This document shows, one piece after another, positions 19,301 through 39,910 of a DNA stretch of 39,910 bases (the stretch's first letter is position 1; the number at the start of each line of letters is the position of its first letter). Made by a program: the position numbers and the translations under genes. The stretch comes from Macrostomum lignano (taxonomy: Eukaryota). The stretch is taken from contig NIVC01004639.1 of assembly GCA_002269645.1 (NCBI GenBank), positions 1 through 39,910 on the forward strand, written 5' to 3'. A model generated the notes under the pieces. That model was not told where the DNA came from, ran no database searches, and saw only the letters and a list, made by a program, of their open reading frames with translations.

Positions 19301-22300
19301 CACCAGCTGCCCTCGGTCGACAGGGGTTAGCGGAATGGTCGTCAACGCAACCCTCCCCGCTACATCCTGATTCCCGGAGCCCCTGCTAAGTCAAGTAAGT
19401 CAAGCTAATGTAAAATGGCATTTTTAAGGATAACTTTTGAGTTATTTCACACGATACTTCAAAGTACTTTCCAAATGACAGCTCATCATAATTAAGCTCA
19501 CGTTCGGCAACAAATTTGAAGCACAATGCATCAATTTTATTAACCAGAGCTCAAAGGAGCAAAACTAAGTCCAAAACTTCAAAATGTTTCTTGAGTAAGA
19601 ACTTACCTCCACTTGCGCAAGCGTAGATGTTCAGGATGCTGAGACTGACAATTTCCGATGAATTGGCCTGCAGGTATCCGGACTTTGCCGCAAATGTGCG
19701 ATTTAGCCACACACGGTTTGTTCCATTGTTCACAGCTATTGTCTGCAGTGTTGGATTTGAGTTTTTTATTATTCCTCAGCATTAGCAGCGTACTTCGTAA
19801 AATATCCCAAGCTACTAGTAATTAATATATACTTTAAAGATTCACACCTGCTCCTCTGGACTGCCAGTGACCCTGAAGAGAACAACACCTTTGTCAACTC
19901 CGAGTGCCAGTCGAACATGGACCGTTACATTGGTGAGATAGCTCATATTGTGCAGCGAAAATGATATTTGCACCTGGCTTGGCGGAGCGCTCTCAACCAC
20001 GCTGAATGAACCGTTGGCCAGTGCAGGGCATTCTGTTGGTGAAACATTCGGTTGGTTTTAGTAAAAATAGAAACTACAATAGGAAAAACTTGACTCTCAC
20101 GAACTCACCAACAGGAAATGCCAGAACGGCAAACTGAAGCCTCGCATCGCCATAGTAGTGCCTTGGCGTCAGCTCAAGATATTTCACTACCAAAGAGCTC
20201 GGCAGGTCCTCAGTGAACTTCAGCTGGGAAATGACGCTGCCAAGAAGCGTGCGATCCGGCATGTTTGCTCGCGGTACATCGATAGGCAGCGTGTCGTCTG
20301 TCTGGCCGTACCGGAGGTCATATGAGCTGATGTACGACCCGTTGTAGCCTGCTGTAATCACGCTGAACACCCGATGCGGCACAGGAAAAGTCAGCCGAAC
20401 CGAGGCATTCACTGGCAGCTCGTAAAAGTTTCCAGCCAGGGCGCCAACTGCCTCCGTTAGGGGCAGCAGAAGCGACGCGGGACCATCAGGCCAGCTGGTG
20501 GCAGCGCCAGCCGATGAATGCTGCGTTCTGATCGTCAACTGGTGGGGCCACACTGGCACTGCTGGAGCTTCCAGCGACACCTGAGCTGAGCAGCCGAATA
20601 GCTCGAGTTTGCCGGCCAGCCTGCCAGTCAGGTGCAGTGGATAGAGGCGGAAGCTCCGACCCACAATGGGACTGGAGAGGCGCTCCACCGTTGAGATGCA
20701 GCTTTGAGGATATCCGGCGGGACCTCGCATAATCTATTGATGGATTATATATGATGGATTTAATCATCACTTTTCAAAGATTCTGTTTTTTTTACTGATA
20801 ATCTGGTACTTTTCTGCGTCTCTACAGGCTCACTCACTCCTGGTGCAAGGCCCCAGTAAAGTCCGGATAGCGAGTACAAAATGATGTAGCTGGTCACAGC
20901 TTCCCTTTCCAGGCCAGGCAAGCAGTAGACTCCTGACATAGCAACAGATTGCACGGTCACTTTATGCAGAAAATCCACCTGTAGCCATTCTTCCAAGCTG
21001 TTGCTGGCTGCTCTAAAGAACCCGTATGTTCCAACGCTTGAATCTGCAATGATTTATAAGTTTCAGTTTGAGTTAGGGCTGAATAGCAAACCAGTAATGA
21101 GTCTGAATCACCAATAGTGCACCCAAATTGATCTAAGGGTGACAGTGGAATTTTCGTTTGGAAAAGCCAGTTTCTAAGGGCAAAATTTTGCACAAAAATT
21201 CGCACATGCCTGAAGATAGGAGAAAGTCAGGGATGCTGTGCACACTTCAAGTGCGTACCTGCATGCTCGTACGAGCGTACTTCCTTCAGGTTGACTTTCG
21301 CCTTGATTTACTGCCGCATACATACATATTTACATGAATTTATAGCAGCAGATGGTGCTCGATAAGCACAAATCTCACTTGCCATTTGCAATATAGTTAA
21401 ACGCAATCCGCTCGGGAGAGAATCCAGCCAGACTCGACTTGGCAGTGAGGCCAACAATTTCCACCGACCGATTGTCCGCCGGATCGCGGCTGATTAGTGC
21501 GCTGTCGCAGTTCGAATCTGCAAGCCGGACGTGATTTGGAATTTTTTAAAGCAATAGATAGCAGAGGTGAAATTCGAAGGAACATCGTACCGTAGCAAGA
21601 GAACCGAACGGTGCTGTTGAGGGCTGCCAGTGGCAGTTTCTGCGACGCATCGCTTGAATCCACGGTGAATGTGGCAACTGGGCCCGACAGCCGCACTGCG
21701 CTGCAGTTTCTCGTGGCGTTCAGCTGACAGTCCAACAGTGACTTGCCTGTCGGCTCAGCACTCTGGTACAGACTTATCTCTGTCAAAGCAGACGGACTCA
21801 GGGCTGGCAGATAAATTTTGGTGTCGCATCGAGTGCCTGGAATCGCATTTGCCCGTAAAATTTATATTTTTAGAAATGAAAAGAAATATATTTTAGTCCA
21901 ATATTCCTGCAGCAACTAGGATGATGTAGGAGATGTTTACAGAACATTAATAATCACGGTAGGGGACTGACCCGGAGCTGCGGGAAGCTCGCACAGAAAC
22001 GGGTGCACCGCGATCTCGCTGTCGCAGGGCACCGTGCGCCACTGCATCCGCTCGCCAATCTCGGCTACTAGACAGTCGCCCGACTCGTTGGCACTCGCCC
22101 AGTTGTTCAGGTGAGCAGCTACGGCCTGGCCAGTGTAGGACTCAAACTGACCTGTGCTGTTGCTGCGCTGGCCGTCAATGTGCACGAACTTGTACGCTGG
22201 GATCGAGCTTAAAACATTGGGATTTATGGAATATAGATTACCTTTTCCAATGGCTGGCACGAATCGATGGATTTGACAAAAGCTGCGATAAAAATTATTA

Positions 22301-25300
22301 TTTGCCGCATTACGTAGACCCCAGGGATGCTGGCGCTTGACAAAGATAGAAACAGGCCCTTTAATTGAAAAGTCCTGGCTACGCCCTCCTGTTACTTAAC
22401 ACCCTTAGACCTCCTGGCTAATAATTTCACATATGGGGATTGGAGGTCTATCCAGTTTGCTCTGATGTTTGCTTATCGATTGATGCGAACCGACCCTGAC
22501 CTGAAGCGATCGCAAGTACAAATTATGTTGCCATGTACAGGTAACATCAATAAGTCATGCACGCCAGTTTGAAAGTACAAACCTATTTTGCAGCTGCCTA
22601 AAAATGAAGCTGAAAAGCTGCAGCTCGGTCTCGGTTGTCATGCGCGCCAGCTGACCTGCGCCCAGCCAGCTGGCGGACTGGCAGATGCTCTGAGCCACCC
22701 GCCTGTTTGCCACCGTGTGCGGCCGGTTGCTGTCCGAAAACGGCGCCCAGTAACAGAAGCGGCCGTGGCGTAGCGAATTTGTCGGGCATTCTGTGAAACA
22801 TTTGTAAGGCGACGGAAGGCTGGTCAAATTAGCTTCATTTTTGTTCTAGTACGCAGAAAATTGAGGCAGAAATTACTCCCACGCATTGTCAACTCGCGTT
22901 ACAATAAACAAACCAATCTACTCACCGAGTGGCTATGTGAGAATCCCTGAGCAGACCTCAGGTAGAGAAGTTGGAAAATAGACATGAATGCATCACGGAC
23001 ATGCATATCTAGCTGATCTGCATGTATAGACATGCATGTATATCTAGCTGATCTGCATGTATATCTAGCTGATCTGCATGAGACATGCTTGTATAGCTAG
23101 CTGATCTGCATGAGACATGCATGTATATCTAGCTGATCTGCATGAGACATGCATGTATATCTAGCTGATCTGCATGAGACATGCTTGTATAGCTAGCTGA
23201 TCTGCATGAGACATGCATGTATATCTAGCTGATCTGCATGAGACATGCTTGTATAGCTAGCTGATCTGCATGAGACATGCATGTATAGCTAGCTGATCTG
23301 CAGCAAAGCTAGCAAAGAATATAATTTCGACCTAATTTTCAAAATGTTTTTAAATTTCTACCAGAAAATGCTGTTATTAAACAGGTTTTTGCTAAAATAT
23401 TTGTTTTCGCAGAGTTCTTAAATTTTGATATAATTTCGAATTAGCATTTCTTGATACTTGATACGTCGCATATGAGCGTTGCAGCGCCCTGTGAGTTGTT
23501 TAGACAGTCATGTACGAGCGTACTCCATGCACTTCGGATTAACGGGGTATGCGTGGGAGCTAGCTACTAGTTTTCCTACCTGCCATTCGACAGCCGCGAA
23601 GCGAGATTGCAGTGCTTAGCTTGGCTGGGTCTGAGAAATTGATGAACAGTTTTGTGGTGTACACAGCCAGCGGGAGGTACTGCTCGCTCCCCAGACTGTA
23701 GTTGAACACCTGGAGCATTTAAAACGCTTAGAGATTAAATTGAGCCAATAAGGTATGAAGCTGAATGCAATGGATAGCGAGCTTTGATTACGTTTGGTGC
23801 GTCACCGCTTCTCACGGTTTGAAGACTTCCATTTCGCAAGCTGATGAAGCTCAAGCTGAATGTGGCATTTCCCGAGCCGCCGGTAAGCCTCCAACCCGTC
23901 ACAACGTGAGGACTGGATAGCAGTATTTGAGCAGAGTTGGAAGACACAGCACTGACTGTTGCCTCTGATGAGTCCAGCCAGTTACAGTCTAAATTTTAAT
24001 GCGATAATTCTGTGCACAGCTCGGGATAAAAGCTAGCAAATGGGAAACAGATTTATGAGCACTTGATAGGTTATTGAGTTTAACAGCCTCACTCACCTTC
24101 CGGATAGCCAAGAAGCTCAAACCGAAGCAACCGTAGATTCTTGGAGGCCTTCGGCAACAGCCGAACAACCTTAGCCAGAAAAGGGCTGCTGAGTGACATT
24201 CGATGGGGTGTGATGCTGTCTGTCAGACCTGTGCCGATGGTCTGCAAACAAATGAATTATTTTATAAACTTCATTGTATTTGAACACCAATTTGCACTAA
24301 GCATATTATAACACATGTTTAAAAATTGGCAAGATTCGAGGGCAATGAGCAATAAAACTCACAGTGCTGAGTCCCAGCGCTCCGTACACTGAGTAGGCTT
24401 GTAGCGAGTTGGTCGAGTTGCCATAAAAAATTTCAGCGGTTGCAACAAATGCATTGTAGCTGTTGGTTCCGTTGGCGGCCAGGTCGCTGAAAACACCACT
24501 GCCCTGCCAAACCAGACCGCAGATCATGTGAGTGACGTCCAGCTGAACCTCCAGGAAAATCTCAGTTGTTCCAACTGAAACGTTTGCGCATTTTCAGTCG
24601 CCAGAGTTCGTTTCTAGGAAAAAGTACAGAAATCCCAGGCATCCCAAACTATAGAAATCACGGGCATCCCAAAATATAGAAATCCCGGGCATCCCAAACT
24701 ATAGAAATCTCGGGCATCCCAAAATATAGAAATCCCGGGCATCCCAAACTATAGAAATCTCGGGCATCCCAAAATATAGAAATCCCGGGCATCCCAAACT
24801 ATAGAAATCCCGGGCATCCCAAACTATAGAAATCACGGGCATCCCAAAATATAGAAATCCCGGGCATCCCAAACTATAGAAATCCCGGGCATCCCAAACT
24901 ATAGAAATCCCGGGCATCCCAAACTATAGAAATCCCGGGCATCCCAAACTATAGAAATCCCGGGCATCCCAAACTATAGAAGTCCCAGGGATCACAAACT
25001 ATAGAATTCCCAGGCATCCCAAACTATAGAAATCCCAGAGATCGCAAACTATAGAATTCCCAGGCATCCCAAGCCTAACGGCTCTCACCGGTAGGAAAGA
25101 AAGCGGCGGGTGGCAGACCGCCGAGCATCGGTCGGTTCAGCGCCGCCATGAAAGGAGTCGGGTGGCTGAAGCCGTCAAAGGGACTGACTGGAGCGGTCTG
25201 TCCGACTCCCAGCTGAGTGACTTGGACTCTGCCGTCCTCCAGTCCGATTGCAGAGTTGATATAGTAGTACGCGGCTAAAATTCAAATTTTTAAGTTAACC

Positions 25301-28300
25301 AGGTTGGTTTCAAGATTCGGTAACACGTCTCTGTTCAAAATGGCTACTCACCGATGTTTGGATAGCCGTAGATTTCAAACTCGCAGAACGAGAAGCCTCC
25401 AAGCGTTGCCGGCTTTAGGAGACCGGCAACCGATGCAATCTATAGATTTTAGCCGGAAATAGTTGTAATAAAGAATTCGTTTCGTCTGTGTAAAGTCAGG
25501 AAATTTGGTTCATCACTCACTCTATCAACTTCCACATTCCAAATGTGGCTCTTCATAAATCCGCCGGTCCATGTTTCAACAATGCTGGCTAAAGAAGTGT
25601 CGGTGCTGTTACCGACGAAAACGCTGACTGACTGCATCTCTTCGATGGTCTGCTGGACACTCGCTGAAATATTTATTAGTAAAGCATAGATTTTGCTTAA
25701 CTTTCTTTTATTTGCTTTGAGTAGATAATAAGTTTAACAATGGACAACAACACAGATTTCAGCTAACCCAAGCTCTCGACCATGTCAACAATGAAAATGT
25801 GGCTGATTATTTTCTGCTCGCCAAGGCTGACCAGCCAATGCACGTACGGCAGGCCGGCTGTGGGTGACGCGCGGATGCACAGTCCTGAGAGCACGTGATT
25901 GGTTAAGTTTCCGTCGACGGCCAGTCCGGCACTACCCAGAGTGATGTTGTTGGACCCAGTCGGGTGCCAACGAGACAGCAAAACCGGACTCGATGGTACT
26001 GAAGAGTTTGAATTGCGATTTAATCATTCAAATAATTACTTTGAAGGATTTAGGACTAAAGGCATGAATGAAATAAAATTTGCTAAGGCATCGATCGTAT
26101 GCATGACAGCAAGATCACGATGGTGCGCACCGCTGCTAGCGTCCTGACATCCGTAGAGCTGCCAGCGAAGTTCGAGTCCGTTCTGCCACTTTCGCGGGTA
26201 GAGGCGAACGCCCTTCACAGTCGGCTCTGGCAGCAGGCGGTACTTCGTCACGTGATGCGAAACGAAGACTCCTGGCAAAGTCTAGAATCATTGGAATCGA
26301 GAATTTTGTTGATGTTTTGGAGTTTTACTGAAGTCCTTGTAAATACTAAAATACTAAAAGTTTGAATGATCGCCTTGAAAAACATTTATTCAAACCGCTC
26401 ACTTCATATTGAAACACTATTGTTGTCAAAAAGTAAGAACTAACCCTACGGTACATCTCCCAGAAGCTGCCTTCCTCGCTGGTGGCCACGGAGAACTCTG
26501 TCACACTGCTAGATGCGCCACTAACTTGTGTGACGTCAGCTCCACCGCCCAAGGCAACGGAGAATATTCGCATTCGTTGTCGAAAAAGCGCCTTTATTAT
26601 GTGAAGGGGACTTTCCAAGTAATTTTGTATTAATTTGTCCCTTCAATTTTAAAATGCTTCAATTTTCACGCATTTACCTGAATAAATACTTTGCTCGTGG
26701 AGCTGGGGCCATCGGTCAGGTAACTCAGAAGGCTGGGTGAGAAGGCCCCCATGGTGCTTGAATCGGTCTGGTTAAACCAAACCTGTGGAGATGCTTCCGC
26801 AGTCGCGTAGGGATCCGTTGGAACCTGCAGTCCCGAGTAGCCCACTCGGCTCACGGCGATCCTGTAGTCGCTGTCAAAGCAGCCGCCTAGCAACTGGCCC
26901 TCGATAAAGGTGAATATTTTCATAGCTCCACTGGCTTCATCCATCTCCCATGTGACTCTCAGGTTGGCGAACTCGTCAGTGTTAAAGACAATCGGATTCG
27001 AGGTTCCAGTGAAGTTCATCGGTAGTGAAGTGAGGACGAAGTCAGGCTGACCGTAGTCCTTGTGCTCGATGGTGCAGTTGGACAGGCGGATGCTGCTTCC
27101 GTTGCCAGACAGGTGGACGATGTAGCGCTTCTGGAAGGTGTTTGATAATGATTTAGTTAGTTATATAGTCAAGTATGACTACACTGGTAGATATAGTTGC
27201 TAAGACTGCATTGGCACTTACATTGAGCATGGCTAAGTCGTAGCCTGTCTGGTTGGTGAGCCACACCTTCAGAGTTTGCTGCCTCAGTCGAGCATTGAAG
27301 CTGGCTTGTCCGATCGGCACCGAGGTGTCCACCACTGAGTTCGGCAGCCACTCGGGCCGAAGCTGCACGCGCTCGTCCAGGGAGTAGTCTGAAATTCAGA
27401 TGGGAATAGACCATAAATGTGTGAAAAGCGTCCAAACTCCTTGCTCAGCTCATTCAATTTTGCCAGACGGATTTGAAAAAAAAATTGTAAAATTAATAAT
27501 GGACCTGATCTGGAGCCAGCGATGATTTTCACCAAGTTCTATTGTGAGGATCACTACACACAAGGACCACTAGACCACAACTAGACCATATACAGTGGTC
27601 CTTGCATGTTACATGTTGGACCGTCACAAAATACCTCATTTGCGAGTAAATAACTGCCAAATCAATAAGTTAAAAGTACAAGAATAGGACTACAATACCT
27701 GAATTGCCTTTGTTTTTCGGAATTTTAAGTTCATGCCTCTTAAAAGGAATAGTCAATATAATTAGATACTGTGACGTTGTCAGTTTAAGTAGCCCCGCCA
27801 AGGGCGGTTTTGACATACGGTACCAATCTATAATATTATTAGTTTCGTTCTCTCGCGTCTGCTTAAAGTAGTGCCCAAAGAATTTTAAAAAGCTGCGTAC
27901 ATTTGTAAAGCCTGCGTACAGTGCGCGATCGATAATTTCTGTTTTCTGTTTTTCTCAGCCGGCCAATAGAAAAGCCGCGCATTAATTATACTAAGTTCTC
28001 CTCGAGCGCCCACCCCCAGCCCGCTCTTTATCAGTTCTGTCTGGCCGTGCGCTCGGGGTTATCTTGGATCCTGGCTTTGCGTCCCCGCCTGTAGACCCTT
28101 GCCGCCCGGCACTCCTGTTTGGTTGCCTTCTCTTCCTGCCTCACTCCGCCACGGCCCTGGCCACGCCTCTGCCACTCTCAGTCACGCCACTTCTACTACC
28201 TAAGCTATCTAACTCATTGTTGTGTAGCCGCCAGTGCATCGTTACGAATCCAACTTGTATTTTGACCTTTCTCTGTTGACAATAACAACTGTTCCAATAA

Positions 28301-31300
28301 ACTAAGTCTGTGGCCATTGGTCGCATTAACTGATATTATTGCCAAGTGCTACCGCTACAAAATTGCCTCTGCCGTACTCATTTGCCTTCGCTGATTATTC
28401 TCGAGGCCGCCACATTAATACGTCACAATAATAATATAATAAATAAATATGTTCAATGCATGTAGTGTCCTACTACGAGCCTAAAATGAATAGTTCTTGA
28501 TTACGACACAAACACGTGTACCAATCTACAATCAGTAAGTCATTCCTTCTGTATACGTATCTAGAAGCGCTTGACGACAATGAGGACCAACTCCCCCGCA
28601 AAGCACAGGGATCAGCAAATTGGGCTTGACAATTTGCCCCTTACTAACTATAGACTGACTGCCGCGTTGATCAGCGGCAGAGCTGGAAAGCCATCAACCT
28701 CCACTAACAGTGAATTATCGCTAACTTTTTTCTGACTGTAGTGGCTTATAGTGGCTATAGCCTGACCATTCCAGTGGCTTACTCTGCAGCAGCAATAACG
28801 ATCAATTATGACCCCGCGGAAGTTTTCCACCCATCTTCCCAGCACACCTCAGCCGACTTTTTCAATAATTGATGTCGGCTCTATGATGACAACCAGTTGA
28901 GCCTCGAAGCATAGCTCCTATCAACAATACACTGGCCTATATGCAATACCTGGTAAACATAAAATGCAGAAAAAAAACTTTTTTAATCAAGTTAGGTGAC
29001 ATCTCGGGATATTGCGTTGGTTTGAGACTGGTCTTGACTAGTCAATAACAAGTTTTAAACCCCTCTCCTCTGCCCTGCCTTGTGTCGCTTTGCCTACGTT
29101 CTCTCTCCCTCTGTCCGCGCTGTGTGGGGGTGCTTGGCTCTGCGTGCGTGGGGTGGTGCTGGGCTTTAGCCTCGGCGCCGTCGCCCCTTTAATTGGCGTC
29201 TCGCTCAGTTGACTCTGCGTTTTTTGGCTGCCTGCGTGAGCTCAAATTTTTTTCTTTAAACTTTTATTTTTCCAATTTTCTTGCATTGCTGTTTGCATTC
29301 GTGATGCCAAATGCACTTTTAATTCGAGCTGTTGCTTTTATGGGGTTGCTTCCGCGCATTCCCTTTCCTGCCAATGCTGTTTTTGATTCTTCTTTTGGGT
29401 TTAAATCAAGTAGACTCTTTCAATGGTTAAAGCTACAATTAGAAACACGTTTAGACATCAATTTAGGTGCGATGCTTGCGGACCCCGTCAAAGACGTAGA
29501 AAAACTTTGTGCTGTTACACAAATTTCAACTTCAACAAATGAGACCATCTAATCGACGACCTGTCAAAGCATTCGGCTTTGAAGTTACTCACACTCTTTG
29601 CCATACACCATGAGCGCCGTGATGTTGAGCGATCCCAGCTCCCGTCGACGGATCAGAGCTAGAAATCGATACGGCCGGCTGCCTGTCACGCAGGCGATGC
29701 TGTAGTCGGTGCTGAGCTGCGGCACCTCAGCTGCTCCGCACTGGGGCCAGTCAGCATAGGTGACGTCACCGAGAGACGCCTGCCAAGAGTTGCCCACGTA
29801 AAGTCTGAGGCCGGGCTGTAGGCCGGCTGTAAGTGCATCGGGGCTGGCTATTAGATTGTATCAAATGAAAAGGTCCCTTATGAAAATGGAGTGCTATGCA
29901 TCTTAAGTTCAATACACGCAACATGGACGTCTATCTCAGTAGTGCATCTTGCAACTAAAACGGCCTGGAGAAAAATTCAGTGAAACTAAAGCGTCCTGTC
30001 CTGCTTTACCATAGCTTCAAGTGGTTTTGGCATTCCTTTGGAATTATTCCCTTCGAAATTGACCGCATGCATCAAGATAACGTTGTTGGGAAATGTTTCC
30101 CAGAATAGCAAACATCCAGAATCACAATGCAGCCAGTTAGTTGAAAAAGCCACCAACCTGCTATTAAGTCCACTCCATTGATGAAGTGAAGGCTCTTGAA
30201 GTCTACAACCAAACTGTGGAGCTGCGAGCCGACAGCGGGTGCCAGCGAGCCGGTCATGACCCGCAGGAAGCCTGGTTGGTCCTGCTCAGATTCTGCAGCC
30301 TTTGGCCGTTGAAGTAGATGGTTTTGAAATAGGCGATGTTGTGGGACATTCGCGAGCTGGCGCTCCATGGGCTGTAGTTGTGCACTAGAATTTCAAAGGT
30401 AATTAATGAGGTAATTATTTACTGTGGATACCTGCCTCAATAATTACCTGTGTAAATTAAAAGTAGAACTCAGAAATATCCATTAATTGTCAGAGAAAGA
30501 TTATCCTTACAGCAATTGTGCAGTATGCAACTTTGTTTCGTGTTGGACACGTCGACGTAACAAAATGGCGCTTCCGTCAACGTTGCTGCAAAGAGTAAAA
30601 TTTTTCTTGCCATTTTTGAAGATCCGTTGTCAGGTACCTTCAACAGTGGTTAGATAAAACCACAATAATCAACAGACTCTACTCACTACTTATACAGTAG
30701 TTCTTATAGTCTCTCTTATTTCCTGTAGAGGCTGTACTCAGACACACGCGACCGTAGGCTGTGACGTTCACTGGGTAGACGTAGTTTTCCTTGTCACCTT
30801 GGGCTATCAGGCAGTTGGCTGTTTTTGGACAAAGTGCGCATTGTTGCAATGGTACTTGTAAAACGTTCCATAAAACTGACTCGAAATTACTCTTTTTATT
30901 GCACATCATAAATTTCTTGTCAAATTCTAAGTTCTCGAGTGAAACGTACCTCTCAGCCGCATTCCACTTCCCAAATGAGAGCTTTCGGCATCGAAGTACG
31001 AAGCCGAGAATGGGAAGCTGGACGTCTGAGCTAAACCGTCTTGGCCAAGCAGGGGTTTCAAGCAGTCTGGAAAATAAAATATTTTTATATGTTTTCTATA
31101 AAAAAACACTTGCAAGAGCAACACCCTGATGAACCTTTATTTGCTGTGACAGCAGAGACGGATCGGATGCTTGAGTCGGCATTTCCGCTGAGCAGGTCGC
31201 TGGTGACGCTGCAGGCAAAGATTGCGGTCGAGCTGCTCTGCGTGTGGCTGATGCTAAATCGGCCAAGAGACTCATCCATCAAGTGCAGCCGATTGTACAG

Positions 31301-34300
31301 CAGCTGTTTGGACCGGCTGGTGCTCGGGCTTCCGTGGGCTACGCAGGCCGACGTGAAACTTCCTCCGTAACTCGGTCTTTCATCGGCAAATGCTACGTGA
31401 CCCAACTGCAGCGTTCGACTATTGCCTGAGTAAAATTTCACCAAGTTTAAGAGCTAAATAATTATAATAGTAACTATAAACATATATAAGCCATATAGAG
31501 CAAGTTTGTATTGATAGCTCAATGTGGCTAAAGATGAAAGGTAAAATATCATGCTTGCATTGGGTTTTCGTACCGGACCCTTGCTGCGCCTGCGCCAGTT
31601 GACACGCGAACATTTGCTTTTCACCATCAGCCGCTGCCACCAGCGCTGCCTGACTGGTGCTCCACAGGCCATAGACATCTCCCGGCTGGCCCAGCTTCCA
31701 GTGGCTGCTGGGCACTGGGGTGCCGTCGAGCCACTGCCAGACGGAACCGCTTCTCACAATTCCCACGTGAATCAGGTAGTCAACCCTGTGGATTCACAGC
31801 ATGTAGACATTGGGGTGAATCGTTAGTAGTGGTCCAACTCATAACAATGGTCTGGCTGCTGATATGCTTTGTACATGTTAGCTAATGAATTTAGGGTACA
31901 AAAGAACGAGTGCTATGACGTATTGAGTACTATTTGTGCTGGCAAATCAGCTTTTTAACGCTCCTACATCGCTTCTAAGACAGATTTCTAGTCTTTTAAA
32001 AAGATAAGCATTGTCATTTTCGGTGCAAAACACTATTTTATGGCTCTGGCATGTGGTAACGGAATTCTCTTAATGAATACTCTTAGACAACAATTGACCA
32101 AGTTAGTTTTGCCAGTGCGAATTCATGCAAACAGTAAAAGTATTCTCGACTAAGTTGATTGCCAGTGCAAATCTGTGGGAATCTATCATATAAATATCTG
32201 TAAGGACTCTCAGTACTTGGAAAGCTCACCAAACAGCCAAGTAGCTCAGCACAGATGCATCCTTCGGCATGAGCAGGTCGCCTCGGGTGCCGGCCCACAC
32301 AAACGAACGACAGACTCTTCGAGCCGAGTCTCTGAGAGCCAGCACGGGGCTCAGGTGCAGGCAGGTGTCACCCATGGGCACGAATCCTGGCGGGCAAGGG
32401 TCGGACTGCTTGCCCAAGAAGGTGACCTCGTGCTGCTGCAGAGAGCCATTGGTGAAGTGAATTTTCAATTCGATCGGCGCCAGAAGAATCGGGAACTCGA
32501 AGTTCGCTTGCAGGGCTCTTGTTTCGAACTGAAAGCGCAATTTTTGCAGCTTTACTGTGCTACACGTAGAATTGGCTACACCAGCAAGTTGCATAGTAGC
32601 AGAGGTGAAGATCTTACCATCCATATGTCTCCCTGTACTTGGAGTGTCGCACTTGGCTCTCCATCAACTTCGTAAGTAATGTAGAAGCTTAGGAGAGAGC
32701 TGGTAGTTCTGTTTACCGCTATCCTGCTCAGGTGGTAGAATGAACTAAACGTCACAGACAGAGTGGAGGTCCCCTCTAGCTGAACAATCGCTTCCCTGAT
32801 AACTTCGGCTGCTAAAAAGTTGGATATACTTGTAGTCTGTCAAGTAATACAATTCAATCAATATATTCTGATGAATCATTGTGTCAAAAAGATTTTGACT
32901 CACCTGGCTCATTAGGATAGCCAACTAAGTCAATTTTCAGCTGCCTTCTTCCACAGCTGCCTGTCACTTTGACTTGCACCAACTTGGCCAGTATGGACCG
33001 TTGAAAATTGACTCTGGCGGTCTCTACGTAGACTTTTGGCCCGTCAAATGACACCTAAATGTTAAGTTTAAGTGGAAGTCTTCTGGCTACGCTTTACAAA
33101 TGTTGGAGTATTTCTCTGCTAAAAGATCCAACGCAATCTTGAGGGGATGCAGAATAGCTCCACTGCAACGCGTCTGGTTATCGCCCTAAAGTGCGTTCAA
33201 ACTCGTTCTGTGGCTTGTCATGCGATTTACGCCCACGGTGGTAAACCTCAAAGAAACAGAGTATGCACACATGTCTGACAATAGACAGTTAGGTCCGTTG
33301 TACATTCTGTACGAGCGTGTACATGCGCACGAACCCGTGTGCGTGCTCAGAGGTCAGCGGACTGCGCATGACTGCGGGTCGACTGTCGTCTGATTTGCGG
33401 CAGTGCCCGCAGCCCTTCTGCAAACTAACAAATTCAGAACGCACACTTGAGCACTATTTTTACTTCTTATTTTAAGTTTGGATAGAAAGAGGAAAGAAAA
33501 GAATGTAAAGTTTACAATGAAATTGCCTCTTTCAAGGTTCTTTAAAGTGTTTACTTCTCAAAACAGCTTCCCCAATTAGTTCGGGGGTTCACTTTCGTTG
33601 CCATGGGTCCCGATTACTGCGGCAGTGAATTTCACATCGTCGGACAATATCTGGCAATGTAGCCCATGGCCTTGACTGGCACGAGAAGCCTCAGACCAAT
33701 TGCCCAGCACCAATCACAAAATTTTGTGACCGCACGTGGAATCGAGCCCGTGGACTCTGGCTCGAGAATAGGACGCGTTTCACTCTGCCATCCAGCCACT
33801 TAAAATAGCACCACTACCCCAAGTTTCTTCGGTAAAGCGTCGCTAACCCTCCGATCTAGCTCTTCGACGATATGCGACTACCTCCCAATCCTGACTTTAT
33901 CGCTGGCTCACGAACTCTTAGCAGCAAAAGCAGCTGGCAGAAATCATTTCAGTTTTCAACCACTCCCGAGCCGCAGACGAAACTGGTATTTTAGCAGCTC
34001 TAGTTCGAGGCCTAGGACAAATGCTATGATTTCTCAACTTTGTTGTTATTATTACTACTGCGCTGTTTTAGTGAACTCCATTTAGCTGATGAACAGCCGG
34101 TTTCAGATTGAAAATTGACAACTGATAGATGAAATATTGATTCCTACCACTTACCGTGGAACCGTCATGCAGATCTGTGAAAGGCACAAGTTTTTCACTG
34201 TTTCGATCAGCCGAATAGAACACCTGAAAGCTGGTGACCATGCCGTGCAGACTATCGAATCGTCTGTAGCCGCCCGAATCAGCAAGCCAGTCAGTGCATA

Positions 34301-37300
34301 CGTGTAAGGCAGGTACAGAGAGAGCCAATCGCTGACAGGGTCAATGAAAGCATGGTGGAAGCTTTCGTCGCCCGGAAAATCCAGCGGCAGCGAGTACATG
34401 TCCGCGCAGTAGTTGCACACGCTGTCGACGTCGGCATGCTGAACACCGGTTGAGGGGAAACGGCTTCCAAAACCGATTGCCACGTCGTATGCTTTGGGGA
34501 TGTTGGAGTCTGTGACATCTGGCACGGTGGCGGGGCATTAGAAGAATCACAAAAATGCTTTGTTTCTCATGCGCAGGGTTTTAATTGGACTCTTTATTGC
34601 TTCCGGGATGCTGAATACTATTGAATTTGAGCTCAATAATCTCAATACTAAGAAAAGGTTTCTTTTGAGATCCATCCAAGGTACGCTTGTAGATTAAGGA
34701 TTCAATGAACGATTTCTTCGCCTAAATTAAGCATCTTATTGTTATGCGTCTGACCTAGTTCGAAAGACTCGTGATATTTCCGTAAGCAATATCCTGCTTC
34801 CAAGAATTGTTACAATTAGAGGTTACGTTATACGAACTCGTATTTTATTAGTACGCAGTGCGATAAAGGACAAAAATGTTTTAGAGGCTCACTTAGCGGA
34901 TTTCCGTAGATTTCGAGCTCAGTAATTTTCAACGTACAGTCTGGAGTGCAGAGACTGGTGTTAGTCTTAGCCAAACCCAGCATTCGAGCGACCTTAAATG
35001 CAAAAGTTTGATAGGCAAGATTCCCAGAATTATTTAGTATTAATATTTTAGTAGCAGTGAGACGAATAACGCAAACAGCTCATTCGAGAGTCAGCTCGAG
35101 CATATCTTTTCGGTACCACCGTAAACCCTTGGGGCAGTTTCACTTTGGCTTGTGTCAGATCGTTGATGAATTCTGAACTTCCATAACGAGTATGTCTCTA
35201 TCTTCTTGGTTCATTAGGTAAAATACTTTCTCCTCTGCAGTAAGGTTTTTAAAATTAAAAACTTTATCCGAAATTTCCTGTTTGAATTTATCACTATAAA
35301 AGGGAGCACTGTAACAGTTACAAGTTACACTTAAACAAGAAGTGAACTTCACTTTCTATTCCCATATGGCACTTTGGACAGGTCTTGTTCTCTTAGTCTT
35401 TGATCTCGCAGTCCTCATTATTTCGCTACTCGTCAATGTTGACAGTTTCACATGATTTCGCTACTCGTCAATGTTGACAGTTTCACATGATTTCGCTACT
35501 CGTCAATGTTGACAGTTTCACATGATTTCGCTACTCGTCAATGTTGACAGTTTCACATGATTTCGCTACTCGTCAATTTTGACAGTTTCAAATGATTTCG
35601 CTACTCGTCAATGTTGACAGTTTCAAATGATTTCGCTACTCGTCAATTTTGGCAGTTTCACATGATTTCGCTACTCGTCAATGTTAACAGTTTCACATGA
35701 TTTCGCTACTCGTCAATGTTGACAGTTTCACATGATTTCGCTACTCGTCAATTTTGACAGTTTTACATGATTTCGCTACTCGTCAATGTTGACAGTTTCA
35801 CATGATTTCGCTACTCGTCAATGTTGACAGTTTCAAATGATTTCGCTACTCGTCAATTTTGACAGTTTCACATTTTTAGCTGTGATGCCAACTTTACTGT
35901 AAACTGGTTTCCCAACTGGTCTCGAGATGATGGAGTCTGGGCGATTTGCTAGTGTGGTCCGGTACTGAGTAATTCTCTTTGGATATTACATGATAAAGAC
36001 AGTCTGTCTAGCTCTGAGCGGGCTCCACTACTGCCAGTATTTTCGCTAACTTGTAGAATTTTCCTGCAAGCTCTGAACTGATCCTGAGTTTCGAATGAGT
36101 AGATTTTCGGAAGACAAGCGCGCTCTTTTACACTGCCATCTAGCAAGTCATCGAATTATCCGACTGATGTAAAATGGGAGGAAAAATTATGCACAAGCCG
36201 TGGGATCGTAAAAAATTGTCTTCACGATCCTGTCAAGTGACGAGTCGTAAATACTGCATAGTGTGGTCCGAGAACAAATTATTAGAACTGAATAAAATGC
36301 GACTGGAGGGCACAGGGGCGTCGCCATGGATTTTATGGTGGGGGGACAAAGCCTAGAATTCTACATGACTAAATTTCTACATTACTTTGGGATTTTGTTG
36401 TTTGCCACGATCACTTTGGCGCCGCATGCATTCATGGCGCTGTATTTTGTCACCCCGAAGCAAAACTATTGATCTCCATAACGTTCTCCAGGACTCCAGG
36501 TGGGGAGGGAGGACAATGTCCACCCATAGTTTTTACTGGGGGGCGGGGCATGTCACCCTGACGCTGTCCCTCCCGGTGGCGACGCTCCTAAGTGGGCAGA
36601 AATATAGCAGGTTGATGAGGCAGTCGTACTCAGTTACTTTGTAAAACATCCTGATTTAACTGCATACTGCATCGCATAATTGTTTGTTCAGTCCGCTATG
36701 CAGCTAAAAGAGCCCCTCACCATGCCAACGTTAACCCGCCACGGCTGCTTCAGTACGGCATAAAAGTTCCGCGCGACGAAAATTGAATCGGCTTCCGAAT
36801 AGGCCGACTTGTTGGTAGCGAATGTGGCTAAGTAGACATTTTTCTCTTTTGAGGCCAAGTCTGAAACAAAGAAGACAAATAGATTTAGGATGAAATTTGC
36901 ACAAGAGATTTCCAGAATGGGTCCGTTATTCGTTCGTTATTCGTAATTATAATTTGGCCAGATGTGCAACCGACAGCTCAGCCGCAGCTATTGCGTGGCG
37001 CATCTGAAGGATGTGTACGGCTGTTCAGTCCAAGGACTAGGGGGTCGCCACACACCCTCAATTACCCCAGCTGATGCTGGCACCCATTTTACAGCTGGGT
37101 GAACTGAAGCAATGCAGAGTTAAGTGTCTTGCTCAAGGAGACGAATTTTTCCAGTGGGATCGGGAATCGAACCCCGACCTTCAAGTCGTGAGTCCGACGC
37201 TCTGACCACTGGGCTACAACTCCAATTGTAGGATAAGCAATGCTTACTGTAGTGGTGCAAGTTGTAGCCGAATACCAGAGCAAATTCGATGTATCTCAGC

Positions 37301-39910
37301 GACACAAAGTCAACAGCAATCCAAGGTCCTGCGCTTTCGACATTCCAAGTTGATGCGAAAGGTTTTCTACTTGCGTCAGTGATATACTTGGCGGAGGAAA
37401 TGTCGCTGCTGACCAGAGGTAAATAGCGGGACATGAGCACAGGTGGCGGATTGTAGGCTGTTCGATCTGAAGAAGCAAAAATTTGACTGCGCACTTTTTG
37501 AGTAACTTTTAATATTTATATTTAGTTATAGTTGTAGATAGCTCATACTTGACAGACAGCCGTACAGCATCCAGCGCGACTCCCACCGGTAGTAAAAGGA
37601 AACCCTGTACATGCGAAACATTTTGCCAGTCAGTTCCGGGAACAAGCCATGCAGAGAGGTGTACGAGTCTGTGCGGAGTTTTCTGGCCGCGATGATTTTC
37701 TGCGGGTGATTAATCAAGCATGTTATTACAGAACTGTTGACCAACAATTTTATCATTGGTAAACCCACGAAAAAAAGTATTAAAAAAGAATGACACCAAA
37801 TTGAGCATCTAGCATTAGTATTTCTTACCAAAGGGTACGGAACAAAAGACTCGCCATCAGTTGAGTGAGACAATATTAAATATCTCGGGTATTGTAAATT
37901 GCCCAGCGCTCTGTCAGTTCCGCTCTGAGTTGCCAGCACAAAGGCTGTGACCGAATTCAAAAATGACACCTACGTATAAATTTCGTTTCGATATAACAAA
38001 TTAATTAGAAAAGACAGCTTTACGGGGAATGAAAACAATTAATTCTGCATTTAGAAAAGAGCATCTTGCCTGAATGTATTGGTCATATGAAGCACACCCA
38101 GAAGGAAAGTTCAGTGAAACCATTGGAGACCAAATTCCAATTTGTCTGTCATCTACAATTTTTAAACAATGAATGCAGCATCTTCATCATCAAGTTCATA
38201 TCAGTGTAGTACAAATCTCAATAACTTACTGGGCATGTCAAACATTACGTGAGCCCTCGTGCTGTCTGATCCATCTCCCAGAGTGGTGTAGCCTACTGTT
38301 TGGATCTGCAGCCCGTTAGTTGGGCTGGGAACTGTCAGGTTGGCGAGTAGAACTCCACCAATGCTGACATCGACTCCCAGCTGCGTCCAGACCAGCTGCA
38401 GGCTTTGATAGTCGTCGGTGGTGGCAGCGACTGAGCCGCTGGCGCCCGTCAGAATCATGGAGGCCAGCGTGCTCGGGCTGGATGAGTCTCCAGTGCGAAC
38501 CGCAGCCTCGCTGAGGAATGCGGCGGTGCCGTTGCCGCCGATTGAGATCTCCCAGCGAGGCTGCGAGTGGATGGGATGTTTTCATACCGTTGAAGCACAT
38601 GCGACAGATTTAAAATCAGAAATTTCATGACCTAAACTAATTGAACTAGCGATATATAACTGTATGAATAAGTTCGATTTAAGAATATTATTACTTCGTA
38701 CCTGCTTTCAATTTACGCTTCTGGGTAATAAAACTAACTAAAGTGCCAGCTTATGGTAAGGATACTAAAATATTGTTTCGCTGAAAAAAGGGCGATAGCG
38801 GAAGCCAATAGGGGTCTCCTATTTACCTGCATATGCTGTCTACTGATTATGGGTTTGTAATTGTAGATTTGCGCAAGGACAACTTAATCCCTAAGGACGG
38901 TAAACTCGAAAATCATGGCGAAAAAAAAGTTAGAGGCTCGTTTAAAAGCATTGTTCTATGGCTAAGCCTTATAGAATCTGTAAGTATATAATACACTTTT
39001 TATTAAATTGCGCTGTGATTGCTTTAACAATTAAAACATTAGTAAAAATTAAGAAAACAAAGCAAATATCAGAAACTTGACCAACAGTATAGGAAAGAGC
39101 CACGTTTTGTATATACATTTGCACAGTGCATAGTGAATATGCCCCCCCACACCCCTGGCATTAGTAAGGCTTTCAGTCAAAAGGGCTCTTTGGGCCGTAT
39201 GCAGAAAGCTCTGTCTAGGTAGTCCGGTCTTGAAAAGCTAGTCTGGACTTGGATTTGGTATGCAGAAACGCAAAGTTAGACCGGTCTACTGTAGACAGAA
39301 CTAGGGTAGCTAGACCATAGACTATAGACTGAACTACCCAAGTCCGGACTAGCTAGTCTGGACTAAGCTTTCTGCATCCGGCCGATTATATGAGGCGTGG
39401 CCATAGAACATTCTTTCAAACGAGCCTCTAATTTTTTTTCGCCATGATTTTCGAGTTTACCGTCCTGAGTGATTAAGTTGTCGATGGATTTGCTTTACTA
39501 ACATCATGATTTCACCATGGACTTACAGAGTTGAGGACATCGCGCATGCTCGTACCGATTGGTCAGCCACAGCTTCAGTCCGGAATTCCTTAAGCGGGCA
39601 AACATTTTCAGCGTGTTGTTTCGCTGTATAGAATCGGAGCTCATTATTTTGGCTGGCACTCGACGAATCAGATACGGATATGTCCCGGTTTCTTCAAAAT
39701 TTTCTGCAGTTTACAGATATTAAAGATCGTTAAGGCTTCCGTTCCCTCTTATGTATTTGAGTACTTGCTGAATATTACTTTAGTATACATTTAGCCGACT
39801 AACCTTCCTCCGCATGCAGTTGCAGGGTAGTGATGGAAAGCTTTCCTATCGCCAAACCCTGCAGAAGCACGTAGCGACCAGCAATGGCCTCTCGCACCAG
39901 AACTTCAGCG
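1201..39910 (-). CDS. Multi-exon polycystin-1 (PKD1-like) family gene, 5'-partial, about 63 exons and about 6,300 aa in window; 4 apparent frameshifts
   Basis: Exons with AG/GT(GC) boundaries and matching phases, in transcript order: 39804-39910, 39516-39703, 38230-38560, 38070-38152, 37829-37969, 37549-37699, 37248-37466, 36721-36860, 34893-34992, 34155-34518, 32904-33054, 32618-32811, 32230-32528, 31574-31785, 31135-31425, 30950-31066, 30687-30854, 30158-30384, 29593-29847, 27222-27388, 26678-27130, 26445-26591, 26131-26281, 25768-25998, 25521-25663, 25352-25439, 25089-25274, 24363-24574, 24097-24241, 23792-23988, 23580-23709, 22583-22790, 21972-22207, 21591-21836, 21383-21517, 20838-21043, 20109-20733, 19848-20032, 19607-19742, 18631-18823, 18058-18296, 16986-17243, 15686-15837, 15429-15596, 14759-14915, 14056-14625, 13834-13977, 13086-13654, 11464-12549, 8969-11370, 8719-8885, 8202-8587, 7872-8096, 7621-7752, 7413-7506, 6168-7312, 5893-6063, 5657-5802, 5074-5584, 4465-4773, 3727-3832, 1678-3211, 1201-1370. 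The order PKD-REJ-GPS-TM-PLAT-10TM is diagnostic of the family. The specific paralog was not determined. Confidence 0.93.
1678..3211 (-). CDS. Polycystin channel region exon: TM6, TOP domain, TM7-TM11 and pore; two frame breaks
   Basis: ORFs 1860-3134 and 1609-1965 contain Y.GGGF..L, LQRLGWLDSSTSLLVVELDLF, LYRY, WNFENWLD, TLFSAMLGKFD and VNLFVVILNDSY, all polycystin/PKD_channel motifs. Acceptor ttttcag|ag at 3211, donor g|gtaaaa at 1678. Confidence 0.93.
3727..5584 (-). CDS. Exons for TM2-TM5 (5074-5584, 4465-4773, 3727-3832)
   Basis: DDHLWMSV, FSRLQRFGVCFCLLFLTMISNAMFY, GFQLPHWCQYVGW, QWLLSF and QPLKV are typical PKD1-family segments. Splice phases 2-0, 0-0, 0-1 are consistent. Confidence 0.92.
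4100..4400 (+). mobile_element. Probable tRNA-derived SINE (family 2)
   Basis: Pol III B-box GGTTCGATTCC at 4142-4152 inside a ccctgg...ccaggg stem, then a GC-richer body and a T-rich end; intronic. The A-box is degenerate. Confidence 0.5.
5657..6063 (-). CDS. PLAT/LH2 domain exons (5893-6063, 5657-5802)
   Basis: Not in the ORF track; translated by hand: YRIDVYTASDRSNAGT and GDINHFTMTTGKHLGDILEIEI...PWMLQKIIITD, matching the PLAT pattern that follows TM1. Confidence 0.85.
6168..7312 (-). CDS. GAIN/GPS-like region and TM1
   Basis: CLIWDSAQEIW...SCTV...PNLIDFGKLF followed by hydrophobic AAVVGTVVALWVIFIPIAVWLRR.D..D. Acceptor acag|at, donor agg|gtgaga. Confidence 0.9.
7413..8885 (-). CDS. REJ domain and post-REJ helical exons (8719-8885, 8202-8587, 7872-8096, 7621-7752, 7413-7506)
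   Basis: GCVSNCAEKV..., PASGGNCTIEPREGIAMETKFRISCWSW and LPVG...AYINVVDSLG match the REJ pattern. All junctions are phase-compatible. Confidence 0.88.
8969..11370 (-). CDS. Large exon: PKD (Ig-like) repeats and start of REJ
   Basis: 793-aa ORF with repeated PKD-like strands (YQINLGNG, IDCGDG, VDFGDS followed by H.Y...G.F.....A.N.VS) and many N-x-S/T sequons. Confidence 0.9.
11464..13654 (-). CDS. Exons 13086-13654 and 11464-12549: Cys-containing Ig-like modules plus first PKD-like repeat
   Basis: Long ORFs 213 and 374 aa; phases 1-0 and 0-0 fit their neighbours; a shared C..L..(V/L)C...S(F/Y).(D/E)...NN..C motif recurs. Confidence 0.8.
12629..12907 (-). mobile_element. tRNA-derived SINE (family 1, copy 1)
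   Basis: tRNA-like head (GTTCGATTC B-box) and central GTGTCCTTGAGCAAGAC...CAGCTGTAAAATGGGT block; homologous along its length to 16569-16862 and 36956-37223. Confidence 0.9.
13834..13977 (-). CDS. EB/EGF-like cysteine module
   Basis: Hand translation AIGEACNADASCSLTGDTVCLSSGQLLDTRCSCRKGFVRVGVECKS; phase 1-1 exon. Confidence 0.75.
14056..14625 (-). CDS. Fibrinogen-related (FReD) domain exon
   Basis: DWMIVYR, YQAGF, WPGLQVLSDLT, LRFD, STFSNFD...CA...GSGWWY..C...LTG and I.W follow the fibrinogen C-terminal domain pattern; phase 1-1. Confidence 0.85.
14759..15837 (-). CDS. Discoidin (F5/8 type C)-like domain exons (15686-15837, 15429-15596, 14759-14915)
   Basis: YFLT|ITFNKQVRVTGFGFMG and QQLRIMPAQYRGAAAFKFDIFGC match discoidin core and C-terminal motifs. 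Confidence 0.8.
15081..15396. mobile_element. MITE-like element flanked by TTAA, with terminal and subterminal inverted repeats
   Basis: ttaa|cagtagaaagacca at 15081 and tggtctttctactg|ttaa ending 15396. A second inverted match: 15090-15119 versus 15331-15360 (27/30). Confidence 0.7.
16016..16568 (+). repeat. 16-bp G-rich minisatellite (GCTTAGAGGGGTTGTA), about 34 copies
   Basis: Period 16 read directly (e.g. 16035, 16051); variants T/A and G/T; abuts a SINE head. Confidence 0.95.
16569..16862 (+). mobile_element. tRNA-derived SINE (family 1, copy 2)
   Basis: GGGGATTGTAGCCTAGTGGTTAGAGCG...GGTTCGATTCCC head with A and B boxes, same body as the other copies, AT-rich tail. Confidence 0.9.
16986..17243 (-). 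CDS. Cys-containing exon, possibly PAN/apple-like
   Basis: DCSRPFYNVIFNYSG...SALVKCQAGACNSL...ICR; strong splice sites, phase 1-1. The domain name is tentative. Confidence 0.65.
17517..17896. repeat. Polypyrimidine (CT-rich) low-complexity tract, about 380 bp
   Basis: Almost only C and T on the + strand. Confidence 0.95.
18058..18823 (-). CDS. C-type lectin domain 3 (18631-18823, 18058-18296)
   Basis: CPVNFYYHEGAC...AEAYC and WSHWAPSQP...CA...WTSVDC...HVICQ; split by a phase-2 intron. Confidence 0.88.
19607..21517 (-). CDS. Two discoidin-like domains and an unassigned beta module (21383-21517, 20838-21043, 20109-20733, 19848-20032, 19607-19742)
   Basis: EEWLQVDFLHKVTVQSVAMSG, FRLYPLHLTGRLAGKLELFGC and YLELTPRHYYGDARLQFAVL are discoidin motifs; phases are consistent. 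Confidence 0.82.
21591..24574 (-). CDS. Cassette B, distal part: discoidin, degenerate discoidin, C-type lectin 2, unassigned module
   Basis: Exons 24363-24574, 24097-24241, 23792-23988, 23580-23709, 22583-22790, 21972-22207, 21591-21836. Motifs LRFELLGY, ECPTNSLRHGRFCY...AQSICQ, NNWA...DCL...WRTVPC...FLCE. Confidence 0.85.
22998..23302. repeat. 32-bp minisatellite (CATGAGACATGCATGTATATCTAGCTGATCTG), about 9-10 copies
   Basis: Period 32 (23141, 23173); shorter variants at the left end. Confidence 0.93.
24629..25072. repeat. 25-bp minisatellite (GAAATCCCGGGCATCCCAAACTATA), about 18 copies
   Basis: Direct tandem units without spacers; fills most of intron 24575-25088. Confidence 0.95.
25089..27388 (-). 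CDS. Cassette B, middle part: FAMeT-like, discoidin, F-type-lectin-like, start of discoidin
   Basis: Exons 27222-27388, 26678-27130, 26445-26591, 26131-26281, 25768-25998, 25521-25663, 25352-25439, 25089-25274. Motifs AVDGN...C...HWLVSLG, FCEFEIYG, VRLYPRKWQNGLELRWQLYGC, YINSAIGLEDGRV. Confidence 0.85.
29593..31066 (-). CDS. Junction exons and F-type-lectin-like domain (30950-31066, 30687-30854, 30158-30384, 29593-29847); one frame break
   Basis: NIAYFK...SC..MT...LVVDFKSLHFINGV and LYVGNS...C...IAC...RFLAL...LNITALMVYG resemble fucolectin-type domains; all exons are phase 1-1. Confidence 0.75.
31135..34518 (-). CDS. Cassette A, distal part: discoidin (one frame break), degenerate discoidin, C-type lectin 1, unassigned module
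   Basis: Exons 34155-34518, 32904-33054, 32618-32811, 32230-32528, 31574-31785, 31135-31425. Motifs SDWLSLYL, VTSFQVFYS, LKIDLVGY, CPPGFVPMGDTCL...ARRVC, WQWLDG...HWKLGQP...FACQ. Confidence 0.85.
33560..33799 (-). mobile_element. Probable tRNA-derived SINE (family 3)
   Basis: Minus-strand head TGGCTGGATGGCAGAGTGAA...GGGCTCGATTCC with A/B-box-like motifs; body unrelated to family 1; 3' end approximate. Confidence 0.55.
34893..39910 (-). CDS. Cassette A, proximal part: end of F-type-lectin-like domain, FAMeT-like, discoidin, F-type-lectin-like
   Basis: Exons 39804-39910 (cut by window edge), 39516-39703, 38230-38560, 38070-38152, 37829-37969, 37549-37699, 37248-37466, 36721-36860, 34893-34992. 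Motifs AGRYVLL, WEISIGGNG, DQYIQ|VSF, HSTDGESF, WMLYGC, LKITELEIYG. Confidence 0.8.
35155..36170 (-). mobile_element. Decayed 3' part of a non-LTR retrotransposon (LINE ORF2)
   Basis: FRACRKILQVSENT...RSELDRLSL (post-RT segment) and C-x2-C-x8-H-x4-C (CPKCHMGIESEVHFLFKC, 35327-35380), with stops and frameshifts. Clade not determined. Confidence 0.7.
35420..35873. repeat. 35-bp minisatellite (ATTTCGCTACTCGTCAATGTTGACAGTTTCACATG), 13 copies
   Basis: Period 35 (35421, 35456 ... 35841); few substitutions. Confidence 0.95.
36313..36590. mobile_element. hAT-like MITE, 278 bp
   Basis: TIR CAGGGGCGTCGCCA versus TAGGAGCGTCGCCA; flanks ggagggca and agtgggca form a 6/8-matching 8-bp TSD. Confidence 0.7.
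36956..37223 (-). mobile_element. tRNA-derived SINE (family 1, copy 3)
   Basis: Head GGAGTTGTAGCCCAGTGGTCAGAGCG...GGTTCGATTCCC; homologous to the other two copies; starts about 25 bp from the donor at 37248. Confidence 0.9.
38878..39482. mobile_element. Foldback/MITE-like element with about 95-bp inverted repeats
   Basis: 38878-38973 aligns with the reverse complement of 39387-39482 (shared GGACGGTAAACTCGAAAATCATGGCGAAAAAAAA...TTAGAGGCTCGTTT). Confidence 0.8.
39193..39383. mobile_element. Nested small MITE with 18-bp TIR
   Basis: ggccgtatgcagaaagct (39193-39210) versus the reverse complement of 39366-39383, ggccggatgcagaaagct (17/18). Confidence 0.7.

Follow-up and report, generated by a model that had tools for sequence, protein, structure and literature searches.

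A predicted polycystin-1/REJ-type receptor gene spans the window

We analysed a 39,910-nucleotide (nt) stretch of Macrostomum lignano DNA (GenBank assembly GCA_002269645.1, contig NIVC01004639.1, positions 1 to 39,910 of the forward strand), referred to here as the window. One minus-strand multi-exon gene spans it, from beyond 39910 to ~1700, and is predicted to encode a polycystin-1/REJ-type receptor; the region 21383-39910 would code for part of its N-terminal ectodomain. An original prediction, made from the letters alone, had described this region as the product of an ancient tandem duplication of a multi-exon, multi-domain cassette. In agreement with the core of that proposal, our analysis points to an old head-to-tail duplication, within the gene, of a block of ~15 exons and ~1,200 amino acids (aa), a reading to which we assign a probability of about 0.85. 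Our confidence in the exact extent of the duplicated block is lower than in the event itself.

The gene was called by combining stop-free minus-strand fragments with a splice-aware dynamic programme and a model of codon usage, itself trained on the long downstream exons, and each exon was refined by inspection of splice sites and frames. Its visible part exceeds 6,000 codons: a conceptual ectodomain of 3,542 aa, free of stops, and in frame behind it ~2,750 aa of PKD/REJ/channel sequence. No in-frame stop codon was found across ~60 exons, and open reading frames of 461 to 801 aa are intact. The whole region 21383-39910 belongs, as coding sequence, to one spliced minus-strand gene, and the model is stop-free there apart from two 1-nt frame problems.

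The exon chain continues in frame into the remainder of the gene (1678..13654), where Pfam matches mark PKD domains, a REJ domain, PLAT, a polycystin domain and a PKD cation-channel region. PKD was matched at 59.6 bits in two stretches upstream of REJ, exons 11370..8968 and 8618..8127 matched REJ at 53 and 83 bits (cut-off 25), and downstream exons matched Polycystin_dom at 64 bits and PKD_channel at 43 bits. It is these matches that lead us to assign the predicted protein to the polycystin-1/REJ type. PLAT reached 18.9 bits, under the cut-off of 23, in a single 63-aa exon fragment. No Pfam match to GAIN/GPS was found in exon 7598..6117 at E <= 0.01, with no motif-level search made.

The M. 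lignano UniRef entry A0A1I8GUS6 is identical to exons 27388..27222 (in part) and 27130..26678 and supports the splice junction between them. Because of this identity we take the window as M. lignano DNA, and the database sequences P0001, P0004/P0006 and P0007, at 60-73% identity, as paralogs. The channel exon is 60% identical to the M. lignano PKD_channel protein A0A1I8GYK7.

Two repeat units with paired exons

Unit A (31135..39909) was defined by splice sites, phases, a stop-free chain and its collinear alignment to unit B; its 5' end is cut by the window edge within its first exon. Its exons are 39909..39804, 39703..39516, 38560..38230, 37944..37829, 37699..37549, 37466..37248, 36860..36721, 34992..34893, 34518..34155, 33054..32904, 32811..32618, 32528..32230, 31785..31574 and 31425..31135. 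Unit B (21591..29826), defined by splice sites, phases and the identity to A0A1I8GUS6, consists of exons 29826 (or 29804)..29593, 27388..27222, 27130..26678, 26591..26403, 26281..26131, 25998..25768, 25663..25521, 25439..25352, 25274..25089, 24574..24363, 24241..24097, 23988..23792, 23709..23580, 22790..22583, 22207..21972 and 21836..21591. It is followed by what splice sites and phases indicate to be the N-terminal exon of the next discoidin domain (21383..21517; 135 nt, phases 1-1), with a GC donor (GCAAGT) at 21383; this exon is the positional equivalent of 31066..30950. The repeat period is ~9.5-10.2 kb of DNA and ~1,180-1,250 aa, close to the super-module of ~1,000 aa and 15 exons first proposed.

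The original prediction had paired the exons of the two blocks by size and phase. Ten of its eleven pairs were reproduced with canonical sites, namely 188/167 (1-0), 151/151 (0-1), 219/231 (1-1), 140/143 (1-0), 100/88 (0-1), 151/145 (0-1), 194/197 (1-0), 212/236 (2-1), 291/246 (1-1) and 117/135 (1-1; GC donor at 21383). The pair 141/147 (0-0) had to be given up: no AG precedes the 147-nt B exon, and the actual B exon is 26591..26403 (189 nt). On the A side, the 141-nt exon 37969..37829 with a 312-nt upstream exon was rejected as well, since the motif VMFDMP, which lies beyond the implied donor, is conserved in P0004/P0006. This conservation favours 38560..38230 (331 nt, 0-1) and 37944..37829 (116 nt, 1-0). 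The peptides quoted for the two blocks were recovered: exon 39703..39516 contains MFARLRNSGLKLWLTN, exon 27388..27222 contains FNARLRQQTLKVWLTN.

For the 3' end of block B, a model with exons 22790..22563, 22196..21958, 21723..21591, 21517..21379 and 21258..21206 was dropped; the adopted model matches A and the third lectin of the gene (described below) in phase and avoids an odd 53-nt exon. Tiny intron-internal exons returned by the dynamic programme (36587, 36493, 36287, 28703, 27858) were discarded as spurious.

The two frame problems of the region lie near 34270 (TTCGGGCGG) and near 30262 (TGCGGGTCA). At each, one extra base is needed; otherwise introns of 50 nt and 47 nt, respectively, would have to be assumed, which are implausibly short and would remove a core strand. 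Two further frame switches, near 1974 and 1790, fall in the conserved channel region, where the paralog P0001 continues through both without a gap. Short G or C runs are present at three of the four sites (the sequence was read at three sites). The four frameshifts are probable long-read assembly indels, gene decay being the alternative.

Units A and B form one collinear protein alignment

Comparison of the A (39909..31135) and B (29826..21591) translations by BLASTP gave a single collinear gapped alignment of 873 columns at 23% identity (E 1.6e-16, 71.6 bits). On the A side the alignment spans residues 15 to 767, crossing the degenerate domain and reaching the first exon of the lectin. Shuffled controls, produced within 25-residue windows to keep local composition, scored 20.7 bits on average (standard deviation 1.9, maximum 27.7, n=100). 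The self-alignment thus contains the one long diagonal that a duplicated cassette had been expected to leave. At the DNA level blastn revealed no similarity between A and B, all matches having E > 0.2, as the original prediction had noted. A homolog search with a 2,011-aa crude A+B protein returned no matches at E <= 1e-5, the word prefilter probably being saturated.

Intron positions were compared over the same alignment, which contains 11 introns of A and 13 of B. Four coincide in the same phase and column, six within 2 columns and nine of the 11 A introns within 8 columns, against null means of 0.08, 0.41 and 1.33; the observed counts were reached in none to one of 200,000 random placements (P <= 5e-6). 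Two introns, after 25089 and after 23580, occur in B only, and the corresponding A exons are fused. All galactose-binding-like domains of the gene have a three-exon plan with phases 1-1/1-0/0-1 in common (25998..25352, 25274..24097, 21517..20109), which hints at older rounds of single-domain duplication.

Each position of the block was also scored separately by Smith-Waterman alignment with shuffle z-scores, domain names being used as position labels only. Reciprocal best A-B matches were obtained for the 'FAMeT-like' domain (FAM, z 18-19), the half discoidin (HD, z 8-9), the second 'FTL' (FTL2, z 6-7) and the full discoidin-like domain (DISC, z 8-9). All four pairs outscored other similar-type domains of the same gene. 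The short C-terminal exon of the first 'FTL' (FTLc) was significant (z 4.8) but not reciprocal best. Sequence support therefore spans ~12 exons and five of the nine positions, while the distal four match in exon order, size and phase only: 194/197 (1-0), ~132/130, lectin exons ending and starting in phase 2, 291/246 (1-1) and 117/135 (1-1).

The expectation that positional equivalents should pair was thus borne out for the proximal five positions, four of them as reciprocal best. It failed in the distal part, where the B lectin pairs with the third lectin and the degenerate domain, the exon after the lectin and the N-terminal exon are silent. The proposed cassette fared likewise: an old multi-exon head-to-tail block is well supported, its distal four positions by exon geometry only.

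The A/B junction predates the split of the paralogs

Two junction exons (30687..31066) were placed between the units by alignment with P0007: 31066..30950 (117 nt, 1-1) and 30818..30687 (132 nt, 1-1). By appearance they code for a discoidin-like domain from its N-terminus to its middle. P0007 is the 264-aa M. lignano protein A0A1I8GE34 and matches 31425..31135, 31066..30950, 30818..30687 and 29826..29593 at 73% identity over 258 aa, nearly gapless. It joins the equivalent of 30818..30687 straight to the acceptor at 29826, omitting 30384..29918, the stretch in which the present copy has a frameshift. Together, the junction exons and 29826..29593 total 161 aa, the size of one galactose-binding-like domain.

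Block B had been proposed to start at 30384. P0007 splices the end at 30687 directly to 29826, and the block boundary is probably not at 30384. The omitted stretch (29918..30384) contains candidate relic or alternative exons, 30384..30126 and 29964..29918, which have the appearance of a second, F-type-lectin-like N-terminal half, include the frame problem near 30262 and are absent from P0007. These features suggest that 30384..29918 represents skipped relic exons.

Since P0007 reads across the junction, no stop codon is present and the model needs no terminal exon between the units, we place A and B in one gene. The presence of the same A/B junction in P0007 also means that the block duplication is older than the gene duplication. 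In agreement with this order, P0004 is closer to A than to B: it is 66% identical to exon A2 (38560..38230) and ~25% to exon B2 (27130..26678), with A2 and B2 24-27% identical to each other. We consider the duplication old because DNA similarity between A and B is absent and because of the evidence from P0004 and P0007.

A third lectin and a recurring distal geometry

A third C-type lectin domain lies downstream of unit B (18007..18814), in exons 18814..18631 (1-2) and 18296..18007 (2-1), and was recognized by Pfam Lectin_C at 25.8 bits (cut-off 22.6). It is the nearest relative of the unit-B lectin (22790..21972), with z 14-19 and 29% identity over 125 columns. Pfam PF00059 gave no match on either the B or the A lectin, and the unit-A lectin has lost canonical cysteines. 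This pattern points to gene conversion, a duplication of its own or a fast-decaying A copy, and the distal part may have arisen in another or a more complicated way.

At 20032..15686 the exon arrangement seen in the distal half is found a third time, as exons of 185 nt (1-0) and 136 nt (0-1), a lectin (1-2)(2-1), an exon of 258 nt (1-1) and an N-terminal discoidin exon. Sequence similarity of this third copy is significant for the lectin only. A third full cassette downstream (21383..13000) was rejected, as domain-level similarity was restricted to the lectin and one discoidin.

Domain labels

Inside the blocks, Pfam F5_F8_type_C (PF00754) matched at sub-threshold level only (13-26 bits against a cut-off of 28.2, E 1e-3 to 0.1), in the half discoidin of B and the full discoidins of A and B. 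The domain downstream of block B (21517..21383 + 21043..20838 + 20733..) exceeded the threshold with 32.9 bits. The 'FTL' positions had no Pfam match at E <= 10, their resemblance to F-type lectins being at motif level and by eye, and pair profiles searched against PDB sequences found no lectin. At the 'FAMeT' position (Methyltransf_FA, PF12248) there was likewise no Pfam match at E <= 10. Run against 1.84 billion representatives, a profile of the paired 'FAMeT' exons retrieved nothing beyond two fragments from M. lignano, both belonging to this gene family, and a bacterial repeat protein judged spurious.

Structure prediction with AlphaFold2 was unusable both for exon 27130..26678 (predicted local distance difference test, pLDDT, 44) and for P0007 (pLDDT 31), which we ascribe to a lack of alignment depth. 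On the former model Foldseek returned no match at E < 0.2, a result that is meaningless on a model of such quality. Profile-profile comparison between domain types gave probabilities of ~1%, the two-row profiles being without power. The names FTL and FAMeT given in the original prediction thus gained no hidden Markov model (HMM), PDB or fold support; F-type lectin, FAMeT and discoidin are putative names, plausible by motif.

Alternative explanations

Several observations weigh against our reading of the locus. In the A-B comparison no signal was seen for the degenerate domain (z 0.2), the family-unassigned exon after the lectin (z -0.7) and the N-terminal discoidin exon (z -0.2), and that for the C-type lectin was marginal (z 2.1); in comparison with its score against the third lectin, the unit-B lectin reached only z 2-3 against that of unit A. 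Phases alone are weak evidence, because the 1-1/1-0/0-1 plan is generic in the gene. The exon model is an ab initio prediction backed by four database fragments only, the idea of a hybrid domain with relic exons draws on one paralog gene model of ungraded evidence, and with four apparent 1-nt frameshifts the copy could be decaying. The distal observations would fit a smaller event, in which only the proximal part (C-terminal FTL exon to full discoidin-like domain, ~10-12 exons, 600 aa) was duplicated as a block and the distal part is an older module present three times (A, B and 20032..15686), through separate events or homogenisation between B and the third copy. The distal pairs are without significant A-B similarity, the B lectin is far nearer to the third lectin than to A's, and a geometry of 185-197 nt (1-0) and 130-136 nt (0-1), lectin (1-2)(2-1) and 246-291 nt (1-1) occurs three times. 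Yet the gapped A-B alignment carries on across the degenerate domain as far as the first exon of the lectin, the 194/197 and ~132/130 exons are closer in size between A and B than either is to the third copy, and that copy has no significant similarity beyond its lectin. Fast divergence of the A lectin, with loss of its canonical cysteines, would moreover give the same scores. We regard a proximal-only duplication as possible but doubtful.

A like domain order could also have been reached independently, through stepwise exon shuffling with no block duplication at all. The single exon plan of the galactose-binding-like domains would make phases compatible, and an identity of 23% is very low. 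Against such a history, one collinear alignment covers five successive domains of different kinds, one of them of a type unique in the gene, A domains are nearest to the same-position B domain and not to others of their own type, and four intron positions match to the exact column; we consider it highly improbable. Lastly, the locus might be a decaying pseudogene copy whose block structure is a fossil without present function, as the frameshifts could indicate, two of them falling where P0001 reads through the conserved channel region. This seems unlikely to us in view of the stop-free exons and the long open reading frames, the conservative nature of the changes at 60-73% identity to paralogs, and the short G or C runs at three of the four frameshift sites, which are typical of long-read assembly indels. 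A pseudogene would in any case leave the finding of the duplication unchanged. Our preferred reading is an old head-to-tail duplication of a ~15-exon block.

Other features of the locus

Intronic minisatellites with periods of 16, 32, 25 and 35 nt (8-36 copies, 90-95% matches) and a TC-rich tract are found at 16016-16585, 17534-17895, 23054-23302, 24621-25072 and 35416-35873. A dispersed repeat of ~260 nt occurs in two introns of the gene (37208..36950 and 12895..12628); a tRNA origin was considered for it, and no tRNA was detected. Between the lectin-like arrays and the PKD/REJ part lie a fibrinogen C-terminal-like domain (14625..14056, Pfam 29.8 bits) and an EB-module-like exon (13977..13834), a combination unusual for a polycystin-1-like protein.

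The M. lignano UniRef fragments P0003, P0004, P0006 and P0007 bear the spurious names CUB domain-containing protein, pilus assembly protein PilW, TonB-dependent receptor and DDE Tnp4 domain-containing protein. P0003 is short of 18 residues, which the gene finder excised as a 54-nt intron.

Discussion

The duplicated block would code for a beta-rich, probably lectin-like string of domains. The string would open with the C-terminal portion of a galactose-binding-like domain and a domain of no assigned family, continue with a half discoidin-like domain, a pair of full galactose-binding-like domains and a degenerate one, and close with a C-type-lectin-like domain and one further exon. The second copy would most likely have arisen by unequal crossing-over or by replication slippage, the two breakpoints lying in introns of matching phase. 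The copies would then have diverged to ~23% protein identity, with DNA similarity gone and exon sizes, intron positions and phases kept. The right breakpoint probably fell within the discoidin domain that follows the block, the first exons of which would have been copied and now stand at the A/B junction. In the paralog, and probably here, splicing would join these junction exons to the first exon of unit B as a hybrid domain; the N-terminal exons that originally belonged to unit B (30384..29918) would then have been left to decay.

Multi-exon tandem duplications within a gene underlie the 7- and 11-domain super-repeats of titin and the 7-module super-repeats of nebulin, both giant modular proteins. 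As in these, several different successive domains, each with its own phase-compatible exons, appear to have been duplicated head to tail, and same-position domains of different copies are more alike than same-type neighbours (here at the four reciprocal-best positions). Unlike titin and nebulin, the present gene has two visible copies, built of extracellular lectin-like domains and not of Ig/Fn3 or nebulin modules, its divergence is far greater (23%), and the junction seems to give a hybrid domain and abandoned exons. Multi-domain super-repeats from intragenic duplication are already well known, and the event described here is an ordinary growth route of large modular proteins. The ectodomain of this flatworm polycystin-1-like protein is of some interest for its size and opacity, as is the possible hybrid domain with relic exons. 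It is conceivable, and we offer it tentatively, that M. lignano, a free-living flatworm, has here a receptor bigger than human polycystin-1, with an ectodomain of >3,500 aa made of fast-evolving, library-invisible beta domains, whose growth is recorded in a breakpoint inside a discoidin domain, a hybrid domain and decaying intronic relics.

The gene resembles the polycystin-1/PKD1-like/sea-urchin REJ family in having PKD, REJ, PLAT (sub-threshold here), polycystin domain and PKD channel in canonical order. Human PKD1 and REJ proteins carry a C-type lectin in the N-terminal ectodomain, as does this gene. It differs from the family in the part upstream of PKD/REJ, which at >3,500 aa, mostly of HMM-invisible beta domains, exceeds the whole of most members. 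LRR, WSC and LDL-A domains were not seen in this gene.

Among flatworms, the family also includes planarian pkd1L-2 and pkd2L-1, the likeness to the present gene being at family level. As summarized in a planarian survey, RNA interference against them leaves rheosensation and the sensing of vibration impaired (PMC11448475, citing Ross et al. 2018). Because of these effects, as reported in that summary, we propose a sensory function for the present gene. By analogy with the family, the protein probably pairs, as the large partner, with a polycystin-2-like channel of ciliated sensory cells, and a duplicated ectodomain would lengthen and multiply its glycan- or matrix-binding surface. A giant receptor can in this way double its sensing surface in a single step, the copies afterwards diverging until no more than exon geometry and protein-level traces are left.

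For annotation, public protein sets hold only short misnamed fragments of this gene and Pfam misses most of its domains. The repeat structure offers a scaffold for a correct full-length gene model, and the A-B alignments are an internal pair able to seed profiles for orphan domains. The hybrid domain and relics, if true, would provide a clean case, found in nature, of a domain repaired after intragenic duplication. To polycystin biology the gene adds a lophotrochozoan member of the family whose ectodomain is very complex. The planarian survey describes flatworm PKD1-like proteins as being without a complex N-terminal ectodomain, a trait it ascribes to chordate PKD1 only (PMC11448475); if true, the architecture proposed here would counter the view that complex polycystin-1 ectodomains belong to chordates alone.

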